A DNA stretch of 64,000 nucleotides. Source: Paragordius varius. Taxonomy: Eukaryota > Animalia > Nematomorpha. Shown piece by piece: positions 8,681-32,836 of this stretch. Both the position numbers and the translations under genes were made by a program. The stretch lies in the NCBI GenBank assembly GCA_964247055.1, contig OZ176059.1:2852001-2916000 (forward strand), in the 5' to 3' direction. The notes beneath the pieces were generated by a model. It saw only the letters and a list, made by a program, of their open reading frames with translations, did no database searches and was not told the DNA's origin. Within the stretch, counting starts at the first letter, position 1; every line of letters starts with the position of its first letter.

Positions 8681-8757
8681 AAAAAAATTTAACCTGGCGT
8701 TACTAATTAACTCCACTAAAAAACATATAAACACATGTTTGTATTGACGAAAATTAA

Positions 8758-8937
8758 CACTTGGATACGACACACTCATTTTAGTCCTTCGATTCAAATC
8801 GGGGTAGTTGGATACCCCAGACCTTTTTAAAATCAACTTTAAAAGTATGGAAAAACCATAGCAAAATTTTGCACTTAGGTAGCATTTATAAATAGAAATA
8901 TATAAAAAAATTTATTCAAAAATAGATATTACTTGTT
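8758..8937. mobile_element. MITE family B, truncated left-end copy
   Basis: TTAA then CACTTGGATAC...; near-duplicate of the first about 180 bp of the copy at 8942. Confidence 0.7.
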
Positions 8938-29298: not shown

Positions 29299-31448
29299 GG
29301 TTTAATAATTATTTTAAATATTTGGTATATTAAATAATTTATAAACATCCAATTTATTTCAAAATATATGTTCATCCCATTAAATTAAGGATGTGAATTT
29401 CGACTACCTTAACTAAAACTGGTTTAAACCGTAATGATTAAATTTATTAGGGTAACTTCATACCGACCATATTGTTATAGTAACTAACTGCCTTAAAATA
29501 TTTTCAGACATAAAAATATTTTTCACAGATAGCTTTCTTGTGCAAATATATTATTTGTTACGGTATAAGTTAAGGTGTAGTAGATTAATACTTAACCCCT
29601 CATATACAAAATTAAGGATAATATTATTAAGAAAACAACTTTTTCTGATTTCTAAAATTTTACATTATATATTACTTAAGAATACTCTCCAGGGGTGTCC
29701 AACAGGGTACTCGCGAGCCATTAGTGGCTCATTGAAAATTTTGAGTGGCTCTTTGAAAATTAAAAAATTTTTTTTAAAAAAAAATAATTTTTAATTTTTT
29801 TCAAAAATTTTTTATATGTAAATTATGCATTTTAATTTTGACATTTAAATTTTTAGAAACTTTTAATAAAATTCTTTATTATGAATATCTATCAATGCAT
29901 TCATTTAATCATTTATAAAACACATTTTTTCCAGCATGTTATTTCCAAGTTCAAGATGATAACTTTCACATTAAATTAAAACATTAAATTACTTGCAAAA
30001 AATAGATATTTAAAGTAATTTATTTAGCTTTCATACCAATACTCGGAATTATAGTTTGGGTCCAATGAAAGATTGAAATACTTGCAAAAAATAGGTATTT
30101 AAAATAATTTATTTAGCTTTCATACCAATACTGGGAATTATAATTAAGGTCCATTGAAAAATTAAATTACTTGCAAAAATAATTTAAAATAATTTATATA
30201 GCTTTCAATATGCATAAATCCAAGAAAGTAACTAGAAAATACAATCCCTGGGAATAAAATATGGGTTTATTAATTTTCAACAAAGCGGAGTGCCTTATTT
30301 GCAAATTTACGACAAACGGGTTTCGCGAATATAATTTAAAATGACATGCCAATACCTGCATTTGGATTTTATTAATATGACTACAGAAATGAAAATAATA
30401 AAATTATTATTAATCTCCAACCAACAATTTCATTCACGCAACCTTATCCGATAGTAAAAGCAAGTTATATTGTTGCCAATTTACTCGCCAAAAAAACGAA
30501 GCCTTATTCTTATGGTGATTTGTAAAGGAATGCGTGGAAATTATAAAATATTTTGCCTAATAAAGTTGAATTAATATCTAATATAGTCTTTCGCGCAATA
30601 CTATGTGTCGACGAATTACAGACATCGCAGAAGAAATTCAACTTTCCCTAAAAGAAAGAATTCAAATTTGTGGCGTTTTCCTTGTCATTTGATGAAAGCA
30701 CAGATATAAGCAACATATCACAATTGGTAGTCTATTTGATGAAAGCACAGATATAAGCAACATATCACAATTGGTAGTCTTTATTCGAGGGATAAATTTT
30801 TTTAATATAACAGAAGATATGTTAGGCTTACTTTCGATGAAAATACAACTAACAGAGATGATATATTTCATGCAATTTTAAAATGTATTGAGGACAATAA
30901 ATTAAATATGAGGGCATGTTTGACAACAGATGGTGGCCCTATGATAGGAAAAAACAAGGGAACGTGAAATTATAGTTATAAGATGGAATCCGATGGTATT
31001 AATGTTGACCATATATATAATGCATTGCATGATTCACCGTGAAAATCTCTGCGCACATGCTCTGACAATGGACAATGTTATGACTGTTGTTATTAAAGTA
31101 GTTAATTTTATAAAATCTCATGCTATGAAGCATAGTTTAAGGAGTTATCAAAAGAAATTCATTCAGAATATGGAGATCTTATGTATTTTCAAATGTAAGG
31201 TGGTTTAGTCAAGGGGAATGTCTAAAAATATATTATTTATTAAAAAGAATAAAAATTTTTCTATTGCAGAATAATTATTTGGTATAGGAAATAACCAATG
31301 AAGATTGGTTGTCAGAATTATGCTTTCCCGTAGATATTACCGAAAAACTAAATCAATTAAATGAATCCTTGCAAAAGCAAGATAATTTGATTGTTGATGC
31401 GAATAACCATATTAAAGCGTTTTGTAAAAAATTGACGTTATTTGAATG

Positions 31449-31987
31449 ATAGAAAATCGGATAATTCATGGCGGAAGGCGCCATCTCCTTATAAGTTATT
31501 AATCAAGAAGGAGTATAAATAGTTAGTCTACCGAGTTGCAGGTTGGATATATTAGTTATTCCTAATTAGCAACAGAGACTATGAAAAAAATAAACACTGT
31601 CAACAAAATTTGGTTTCTTGATTTTCTAATTATAAAAAGCTTAATCCTGGCTTAAGGATTATAAGGAGTCATAATATTTGGTTGAATTTTGGTATTATCG
31701 GTTTTCCAATATGGACTCTAAGCTCTATAATATTCGTTTCCCCGACTCTATTCGGTTTCAATCTAAAACTCAATATATACAATTCCTGAACTGACAGTGT
31801 TTACCCGTGTTCATTATGTGTGGCTGATGAGTCCACAAAAAGGACGAAACGCGTCTCACACTATGACACGTGGTAAACACTGTCAACAAAATTTGGTTTC
31901 TCATAGTCTCTGTTGCTAATTAGGATATACTAATAAATCCAACCTGCAACTCGGTAGACAAACTATCTATACTCCTCTTGATTTATT
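31449..31987 (+). mobile_element. Non-autonomous Penelope-like/retrozyme-type insertion nested in hAT family 1
   Basis: 12-bp TSD GTTATTTGAATG (31437-31448 and 31988-31999); removing the insert restores the transposase frame; inverted arms about 31499-31584 and 31901-31987; 28-bp direct repeat at 31591 and 31874; contains a hammerhead ribozyme. Confidence 0.8.
31818..31861 (+). ncRNA. Minimal type I hammerhead ribozyme
   Basis: GTGTGG-CTGATGA-GTCC-ACAAAAA-GGAC-GAAA-CGCG-TC-TCACAC: complete core (CUGAUGA, GAAA, GUC site at 31853-31855), 4-bp helix II, minimal helix III with palindromic CGCG; helix I extends out to 31792-31885. Confidence 0.9.
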
Positions 31988-32432
31988 GTTATTTGAATGC
32001 CATTTAAAAAAAATAATGCTGAACACTTTCCAGAATTGAATAGATTTAAAGCTGGTAAAACTAACGATTTTTCAAAATATGCAGATCAAATTAACATATT
32101 ATCAAAAGCTTTTAATAATCGATACGGGGATATGACAAAATATGAAAAAATATTTGATTTATTTTTTGTCCATTCTACGTTGATGCTATCAACGCTCCTA
32201 TTAATTTACAAATGGAATTACTAGATTTGCATTCCAATAATGAATTAAAATTATTATTTAAGCAAACAAAAATATATTGAATTTTATAAAAAATATATAA
32301 CGTTTGATAAATTTCCCAAATTGATATTTATTTAGCAAAGCATTATGATATTTATACTGTTTATTTTCTTTTTGATATGAAAATTAGCACATCTATATGT
32401 TAATATAATAAATTTATTTGTTACCAATGTGT

Positions 32433-32471
<39 letters not shown>

Positions 32472-32836
32472 GGCTCTTTGGAATTTTGAGGTCGAAAAGG
32501 TGGCTCTTCAAGCCATTTGTGTTGGACACCCCTGCTCTACACCTTTGTCATTATAGGTGTAATATAATTTATTTCATCTATTACAATAAATTGATAGATA
32601 TCGATTTAAAAAAACATACATTTGTTTACTCAAACTACATATACCTATTAATAATTTAAAATTTTCCAAGATTTTTGTTGTAATTTTACCTTCATTAATT
32701 TAAAATGTTAAAGGACTGATATGCATAACAGGCTAATCGAAAATTCGCAGAACTGATTTGAGCAAAAGAATTTATGGCAGTTTGTTAGAGTTTATATTTC
32801 AATTGATTTTATTTTATAAATTTATTTCGTTTTCGA

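Follow-up and report, generated by a model that had tools for sequence, protein, structure and literature searches.

How a DNA element that encodes no protein came to be inserted and copied is the question raised by positions 31449-31987 of the 64,000-nucleotide stretch of Paragordius varius DNA (contig OZ176059.1) that was analyzed here at its full length and is called the window below. These 539 bp, which carry a hammerhead ribozyme (HHR), were assigned in the original prediction to a new retrozyme or Penelope-like family, mobilised through a self-cleaved and possibly circular RNA of roughly 283 nt. On the evidence of its anatomy and of the family members elsewhere in the 110.5-Mb genome, it is quite probable that the 539 bp represent one insertion of a short hammerhead retroelement without an open reading frame (ORF), which integrates in the fashion of Penelope-like elements (PLEs) and is presumably mobilised in trans by one of the PLE reverse transcriptase (RT)/GIY-YIG proteins of the same genome. 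As a non-autonomous PLE-type, retrozyme-related element it is of a known kind; at the level of the family, two regularities stand out, namely an invariable pairing of long and short tails, and a conserved ribozyme that has no tandem partner.

The insertion and its family

The insertion lies between two copies of a 12-bp target-site duplication (TSD; GTTATTTGAATG), which form a direct repeat with its left copy at 31437-31448 and its right copy at 31988-31999, as had indeed been predicted. Both flanks belong to a host repeat that is present in at least 40 copies in the genome, and in at least 20 of these paralogous copies the match to the left flank and the match to the right flank overlap by exactly 12 bp in genome coordinates, as exemplified by C3:3091489-3092097 with 3092086-3092441, and by C9:3746310-3746922 with 3745966-3746321. 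The overlap, in which the TSD is present once, means that these sites are empty, and thus that both the insertion and its TSD are real. The same joined form, with 31436 directly followed by 31988, was found in DNA contigs of public runs, where 11-12 letters fit both sides. Of the 31 joints in these short DNA-type contigs, 15 were listed, and none of the 15 is back-joined; no run recorded as RNA contained the element, and one putative RNA run, given as contigs that cannot show RNA ends, had no match to it. At the filled sites, namely the window and the loci L002, L003, and L004, the flanks stand about 539 bp apart.

The left part of the insertion (31449-31590, reverse strand) is an inverted, heavily 5'-truncated copy of the 3' end of the element (approximately u447-586, where u marks family coordinates) with a short A-run junction at its end; it was recognized by its reverse-complement match to 31897-31986, and arms of this type recur in independent loci. 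The two inverted arms are 91% identical over 80 nt (31509-31588 versus 31897-31976) and can be extended to about 90 nt (31498-31588 versus 31897-31986), which bears out the predicted inverted copy of about 85 bp of the 3' end at the 5' side. The outermost 49 nt of the inverted copy (31449-31497, reverse strand) make up a PLE-type tail, i.e., the extra portion of the long 3' end described below. This tail contains a GC hairpin at 31468-31484 (ATGGCG-GAAGG-CGCCAT), a spacer, and the first 10 or so nucleotides of the next unit; in L010, L023, and L052 its sequence is found at the canonical unit junction, and it is missing from the 3' end of the direct copy. On the forward strand there follows a 28-nt remnant of an upstream partial unit (31591-31618, corresponding to u426-453), identified by the direct repeat and by alignment to L010 and L023, which is all that is left of that unit in the window copy. 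The rest (31619-31987, forward strand) is a direct copy of the unit body, which opens with the unit start (TGATTTTCTAATT...) and finishes at the short 3' end (...CTTGATTTATT); short ends stop identically in independent loci. Within it, at 31874-31901 on the same strand, the second copy of the 28-nt direct repeat occupies its normal family context, which is the end of helix I of the ribozyme and the start of the 3' region. No ORF was found in the element, the longest stop-free stretch being 55 amino acids, and the predicted absence of an RT reading frame is thus upheld.

The two 28-nt copies (31591-31618 and 31874-31901) are perfect repeats with a spacing of 283 nt, and this part of the prediction stood. 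The further claim, that they bracket one ribozyme-containing unit, failed at the level of the family, since independent copies repeat every 405-412 nt; nor is there a second ribozyme in the upstream 28 nt. The 283-nt spacing was seen only in the lineage of the window, i.e., the window itself, L002-L004, and probably L011, all of which have the same flanks and TSD. The loci L001-L004, of which L001 is the window, have in common their flanks, the TSD, and a peculiar internal junction, and their inserts and flanks have diverged equally (93-96% identity); they are thus one insertion that was later dispersed with the host repeat. Judging from its matches, L011 is probably a fifth, internally deleted descendant. 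Read in this manner from their alignments, L001-L004 provide no evidence for the 539-bp architecture as a mobile unit, and the window locus is a single, old, ORF-less, ordinary dead copy.

The family itself is considerably larger. At least 117 matched element pieces were found in the genome. Ribozyme cores within three mismatches number 76, equally divided between the strands (38 each), with none in a reversed control, and the tail hairpin motif has 188 genome matches as opposed to 17 in the control, or approximately 170 tail hairpins. The 3' ends thus outnumber the internal parts, as predicted by 5' truncation. A full-length copy is about 560 nt long. The copies fall into two subfamilies, A, to which the window belongs, and B, which are approximately 75% identical overall. 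Subfamily B has a 74-nt direct repeat at a spacing of 412 nt, and the coordinates of L006 give a period of 405 nt for subfamily A. Two independent A copies, L010 (with a TSD of its own) and L023, contain the canonical junction, in which the 3' region is followed by the GGAGATGGCGCCTTCCGCC hairpin, an A-rich spacer, and the unit start, (A/G)ATTTTCT...ATTATAAAAAGC. As aligned here, these copies establish a canonical unit of about 405 nt in A and 412 nt in B, consisting of the unit start, the hammerhead with a long helix I, the 3' region, the GC hairpin, and the A-rich spacer. The direct copy in the window lacks the canonical junction; instead, the 28-mer of u426-453 is fused to u171, and 122 nt (u454-575) have been skipped at a TTTCT microhomology. 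The value of 283 nt is thus 405 minus 122, and it is to be noted, as a caution, that a repeat spacing in one copy should not be taken as the unit of a family. Overall, the assignment to a retrozyme or Penelope-like family survived in so far as the element is ORF-less, multi-copy, and hammerhead-bearing with a PLE-related structure, although its 283-nt unit is private to the window lineage.

Across independent loci, the insertions have several signatures in common. Their 5' ends are scattered, from u166 to u514, and in eight loci (L006, L007, L009, L010, L016, L017, L023, and L028) the insertion starts with a partial upstream unit, resembling the direct repeats known in PLEs as pseudo-long terminal repeats (pLTRs). 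Without exception, these upstream units end within u426-510, before the upstream ribozyme is reached, five of them at u426-432. In the longest arms (window 31591, L009, L016, L023, and L028; u426-432), the 5' ends gather at a distance of 20-24 nt from the ribozyme cleavage site, on its downstream side, and not at the site itself. The cluster could reflect a transcription start, stalling of the RT at helix I, or a structure inherited from the master copy; the five stops point to a master RNA that is linear, with its 5' end fixed, and not circular. A head-to-head inverted partner is present in most loci, the arm lengths differing and varying in every independent locus. When the 76 cores were examined for pairs less than 1 kb apart, all 12 pairs were head-to-head (-,+) and none was direct. 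Direct ribozyme pairs were also absent with a looser core pattern and in scans with the Rfam models RF00163 and RF02275, in which only the best candidates were scored, so that a few could be missed. TSDs of 12-15 bp were found at L005, L006, L007, L009, L010, L018, and L026; L014 has only an 8-bp candidate, and none was found at L012, L016, L017, and L028.

The 3' ends, by contrast with the scattered 5' ends, are fixed. There are two of them, 47-49 nt apart and flanking the GC hairpin, namely a short end (...TTGATTTAT) and a long end (...GATTTTCTA), neither of which has a poly(A) or simple-repeat tail. In all 11 independent pairs (L005, L006, L007, L009, L010, L014, L018, L026, L051, L052, and the window at 31449-31987), one arm has the long end and the other has the short; long/long and short/short combinations never occur.

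The hammerhead ribozyme

The ribozyme occupies 31792-31885 of the forward strand and is a type-I hammerhead with a long helix I, as indicated by its match to Rfam, its predicted fold, and its conservation. Over its whole length, Hammerhead_HH9 (RF02275) aligned with 31805-31877 (35.4 bits, E-value 3.4e-7); at the Rfam gathering thresholds, the whole window gave no match, the hammerhead appearing only at E-value thresholds. The full core, CUGAUGA...GAAA, lies at 31823-31850 (CTGATGAG...CGAAAC), helices I and II are complete, and cleavage is predicted between 31855 and 31856, after C31855. There is one ribozyme and one cleavage site at the locus. The 94-nt block folds with -46.4 kcal/mol, corresponding to a z-score of -6.5 against shuffles. 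Both RF02275 and RF00163 match at full length, and the element has the same catalytic core, the same type-I topology, and the same helix II with an A-rich loop, here GUCC/GGAC with a loop of 7 nt. It differs from both models in helix III, which is cut down to 1 bp (A-U) closing a CGCG loop, such that ACGCGU is palindromic, and in helix I, in which the 6 proximal bp are extended via an internal loop to about 28 bp. Rfam matches to mir-2008, snoR120, and CRISPR-DR2 were also obtained and were dismissed as far below threshold; the mir-2008 match merely mirrors the long helix I.

The pairing is well preserved in the family, since 94% of the ribozyme pair cells hold across 32 copies. Between the two subfamilies, the ribozyme block is 91-96% identical, as compared with 67-68% for the 5' part and only 52-57% for the 3' part. 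The ribozyme is thus far better kept than the parts that flank it, which indicates strong constraint on the ribozyme and its long helix I in the propagating lineages; as judged from these identities, selection has preserved the hammerhead in those lineages that are active.

Further hammerhead cores, with other helix II sequences, were noticed at C3:5417219 (-) and 5417918 (+), C1:12267181, C2:4924865, C5:12825651, and C6:83868, one of which again forms a head-to-head pair. These may belong to other small ribozyme families.

Proposed mobilisation and candidate Penelope-like partners

The signatures described above have precedents in the PLE literature. PLE insertions are highly 5'-truncated, are often partial tandems (pLTRs), have an adjacent inverted 5'-truncated copy, and bear a tail of 30-40 bp at one end only (Craig et al., PMC8557442). 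In vitro, the PLE protein cuts and extends both target strands, and reverse transcription starts at two adjacent internal stem-loop sites, the tail being the stretch between them; cleavage by the PLE hammerhead is protein-assisted and is dispensable for insertion (Frangieh et al., PMC11167929). Hammerhead pairs on opposite strands, 100-700 bp apart, have been attributed to truncated PLEs, and type-I HHRs have a helix III of 1-2 bp and a palindromic loop (Cervera and de la Pena, PMC4209133). When the element is compared with the canonical endonuclease-containing (EN+) PLEs (Penelope/Poseidon, Neptune, Cercyon, and relatives), the two are alike in 5' truncation, in the pLTR-like partial tandem, and in the adjacent inverted 5'-truncated copy, as well as in the optional tail, which is found at one end only and lies between two fixed 3' ends at a stem-loop. 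They also have in common AT-rich targets with TSDs, and a hammerhead of type I whose helix III is minimal and palindromic. The element differs from the EN+ PLEs in that it lacks the RT/GIY-YIG ORF and has a full length of only about 560 nt, and in its ribozyme, which is of the canonical metazoan kind (6-bp proximal helix I, 4-bp helix II), whereas autonomous PLEs typically carry a min-HHR.

A course of events in keeping with PLE-type integration can be outlined as follows. Staggered nicks 12 bp apart would have been made at an AT-rich site inside the hAT-like host repeat, and reverse transcription would have begun at two internal sites of the RNA, one on either side of the hairpin, as observed in vitro for an Anolis PLE. 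One DNA end would thereby have received the 140-nt copy with the long end, and the other the near-full-length copy with the short end. The 122 nt would have been skipped at the TTTCT microhomology during synthesis of the complementary DNA (cDNA), or earlier in the template, which would have produced the 283-nt spacing; later, the filled host repeat would have given rise to copies at three or four other loci at least.

The genome contains candidate donors of the machinery. There are at least four PLE RT lineages, 31-100% identical, several of which have long open frames. The locus L038:6349-8712 (-), equivalent to C1:4914348-4916711, contains an uninterrupted frame of 788 amino acids and is apparently an intact autonomous PLE; its paralogue at L039:6592-8046 has RVT_1 followed by a C-terminal GIY-YIG domain. 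The insertions of the PLE lineage that was compared with the element have an inverted, 5'-truncated upstream copy and a pLTR, in the same style as the element. Scanning with Rfam detected no hammerhead in the PLE loci, and ORF scans around ten further ribozyme loci revealed no long ORF next to them.

By eye, a hammerhead-like motif (UUGACAAA, a 6-bp hairpin, and GAAA) was seen in the PLE pLTR at L038:6254-6282 (-) and 8739-8767 (-), with U3/A8 in place of C3/G8; the same core covariation has been described for Cercyon PLEs (PMC4209133).

Several observations weigh against mobilisation by a PLE, or against the hammerhead assignment. No nucleotide similarity was found between the element and the one PLE lineage that was compared out of the four or more in the genome (BLASTn, five GIY-YIG loci), and an autonomous PLE whose ribozyme, hairpin, or termini agree with those of the element was not encountered there. 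The surroundings of the PLE RT matches, out to 10 kb, contain none of the 76 ribozyme cores and none of the 100 hairpin matches listed (188 in all). Since the partner was not found, mobilisation by a PLE is inferred from the anatomy of the insertions. The tail of the element measures 49 nt, as opposed to the 30-40 bp of published PLE tails. With regard to the ribozyme, the HH9 score of 35.4 is lower than the gathering score of 52, and RF00163 reached about 32 bits versus 34, so that both are sub-threshold; in addition, no significant covariation was detected in the 32-copy alignment, a test that is uninformative here because the ribozyme block barely varies.

The peptide KKLNPGL, originally taken as a faint remnant of the GIY-YIG C-terminus, is absent from the GIY-YIG PLE protein of this genome, and BLASTx of the element against the PLE proteins of the genome at lax settings gave a best E-value of only 0.07 over 21 amino acids; for lack of translated similarity, this hint was ruled out as noise.

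The family also invites comparison with the metazoan non-LTR (long terminal repeat) retrozymes, which are made up of 150-450-bp direct tandem repeats with canonical type-I hammerheads and give rise to circular RNAs (PMC7229834), and for which an origin from PLE pLTRs has been argued in vertebrates (Li et al. 2026 preprint, 10.64898/2026.07.22.740005). The likeness extends to the ORF-less state, low GC content, a unit size within 150-450 bp, the canonical type-I hammerhead, TSDs longer than 4 bp, coexistence with PLEs, and the proposed pLTR origin. Those retrozymes, however, occur in direct tandem arrays, from dimers to multimers, that yield circular RNAs, whereas in the present family, which has no direct ribozyme tandem in its 76 cores, the copies are dispersed and truncated, and the pairs are inverted, standing head-to-head. 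It was indeed found to be a dispersed, hammerhead-bearing family and not a single-copy sequence, although neither direct ribozyme tandems among the 76 cores nor a linked PLE RT/GIY-YIG ORF was encountered.

This difference bears on the route first proposed for the locus, in which the 283-nt unit between the 28-nt repeats is excised by the hammerhead, circularized, and used as the template for retrotransposition by a non-LTR retrozyme. Real as the 283-nt spacing is, and canonical as the ribozyme is in the metazoan type-I sense of retrozymes, the upstream 28 nt are merely the distal 3' strand of helix I. With its single ribozyme, a transcript of the locus would be cut only once, and thus neither a unit-length nor a circular RNA would be released. 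The spacing is, moreover, confined to copies that have the flanks and TSD of the window insertion, as against the independent period of 405-412 nt, and no two of the 76 cores stand in direct tandem. The 3' region, the hairpin, and the inverted arm would all lie outside the supposed circle, and yet no other parts of the family are so well represented. Mobilisation through a 283-nt circle is accordingly regarded by us as extremely improbable. A genuine retrozyme route would fare better if the circular or multimeric RNA had the true unit length of about 405-412 nt and was reverse-transcribed by rolling circle, the partial tandems and the long 3' end being traces of that template. Copies longer than one unit do occur as cDNAs in at least eight independent insertions, the long tail crosses the unit junction by 10 nt, the ribozyme is strongly conserved, and the unit size, low GC, and TSDs of more than 4 bp match the description of metazoan retrozymes (PMC7229834). 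On the other hand, two directly ordered ribozymes were found together in no insertion, excision of a unit would be impossible from a master that has a single ribozyme, and the halting of all upstream units at u426-510, short of the ribozyme, is better accounted for by a linear master RNA whose 5' end is fixed than by a circle. We consider this second route unlikely.

Integration of a kind other than PLE-type is also to be weighed, either as a foldback DNA transposon resembling a miniature inverted-repeat transposable element (MITE), or as a short interspersed element (SINE) moved by a long interspersed element (LINE) with occasional twin priming. The inverted repeats of about 90 nt together with the TSD do look superficially MITE-like. 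However, these repeats are not terminal, as the two ends differ by 49 nt; the arm lengths, variable in every independent locus, follow the pattern of 5' truncation and not that of terminal inverted repeats; and, for a cut-and-paste element, a TSD of 12-15 bp would be long. As for the SINE alternative, the genome is rich in LINE-type RTs, and two of the ribozyme loci lie 0.5-1.6 kb from LINE-type RT matches, which is about the chance expectation; against it stands the lack of a poly(A) or simple-repeat tail at either of the fixed 3' ends. Inverted partners, moreover, are the rule here and not the exception (12 close pairs in 76 cores). These explanations, taken together, appear very improbable to us.

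Returning to PLE-type integration in trans, a more specific proposal can be made, which we offer tentatively and consider rather doubtful, namely that the PLE integration machinery has in this family a natural minimal substrate (ORF-less, about 560 nt), that its strictly paired ends and head-to-head arms record coupled priming on both target strands, at the two RT start sites beside the hairpin, and that its hammerhead serves a function other than the excision of circles. Such a function could be, for example, protein-assisted cleavage or cleavage in trans, or a role as a recognition structure. The canonical metazoan type-I hammerhead is thought to cut efficiently only as a dimer (PMC4209133), and the family could throw light on the role of a hammerhead in an element in which the tandem needed for dimeric cleavage or for circles never arises. 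It illustrates, in compact natural form, the link between the hammerhead repeats of animals and the PLEs, and the presence of PLE signatures in an element of approximately 0.4-0.6 kb, along with its two sharp 3' ends at the hairpin and their unvarying long/short pairing, makes it a convenient substrate on which the model of internal initiation and two-strand integration can be studied.

The host repeat and other observations

The host repeat looks like a decayed hAT-type transposase-like sequence, a label that derives in part from transposase-like motifs read by eye. Its left portion in the window (30850-31448, forward strand) has 41 genome matches at 84-90% identity, and its continuation on the right (31988-32586, forward strand) has 71. 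A host reading frame, ...KKLTLFEC/HLKKNNAEHFPEL..., also read by eye, spans the insertion site. A Pfam search of a 173-amino-acid ORF in the paralogous host repeat of L002 gave a weak, sub-threshold match to DUF4371 (E 0.005), and the host-repeat protein had no match in a protein atlas.

Two further features of the same repeat were noticed. In other copies, approximately 330-370 extra bp lie between the parts that match window 31988-32345 and 32317-32542; as read from these alignments, either the window host copy would have suffered a deletion there (32318-32345 onward), or the other copies would carry an insertion. A (TA)n microsatellite is found at 32432-32470, inside the host repeat.

Elsewhere in the genome, the best GIY-YIG match, C4:2321709-2321936 (58 bits, in a frame of 134 amino acids), lies outside any PLE RT match and is probably a host GIY-YIG gene. 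Finally, the region C2:1.86-3.16 Mb contains at least 35 RT ORFs of 1148-1236 amino acids, most of them 1234-1236 amino acids long, whose RVT_1 scores are identical or nearly so. The spacing between them is mostly about 14-29 kb, and they lie in blocks of both orientations, and the region is either a large array of near-identical elements of the non-LTR type or a segmentally duplicated region.

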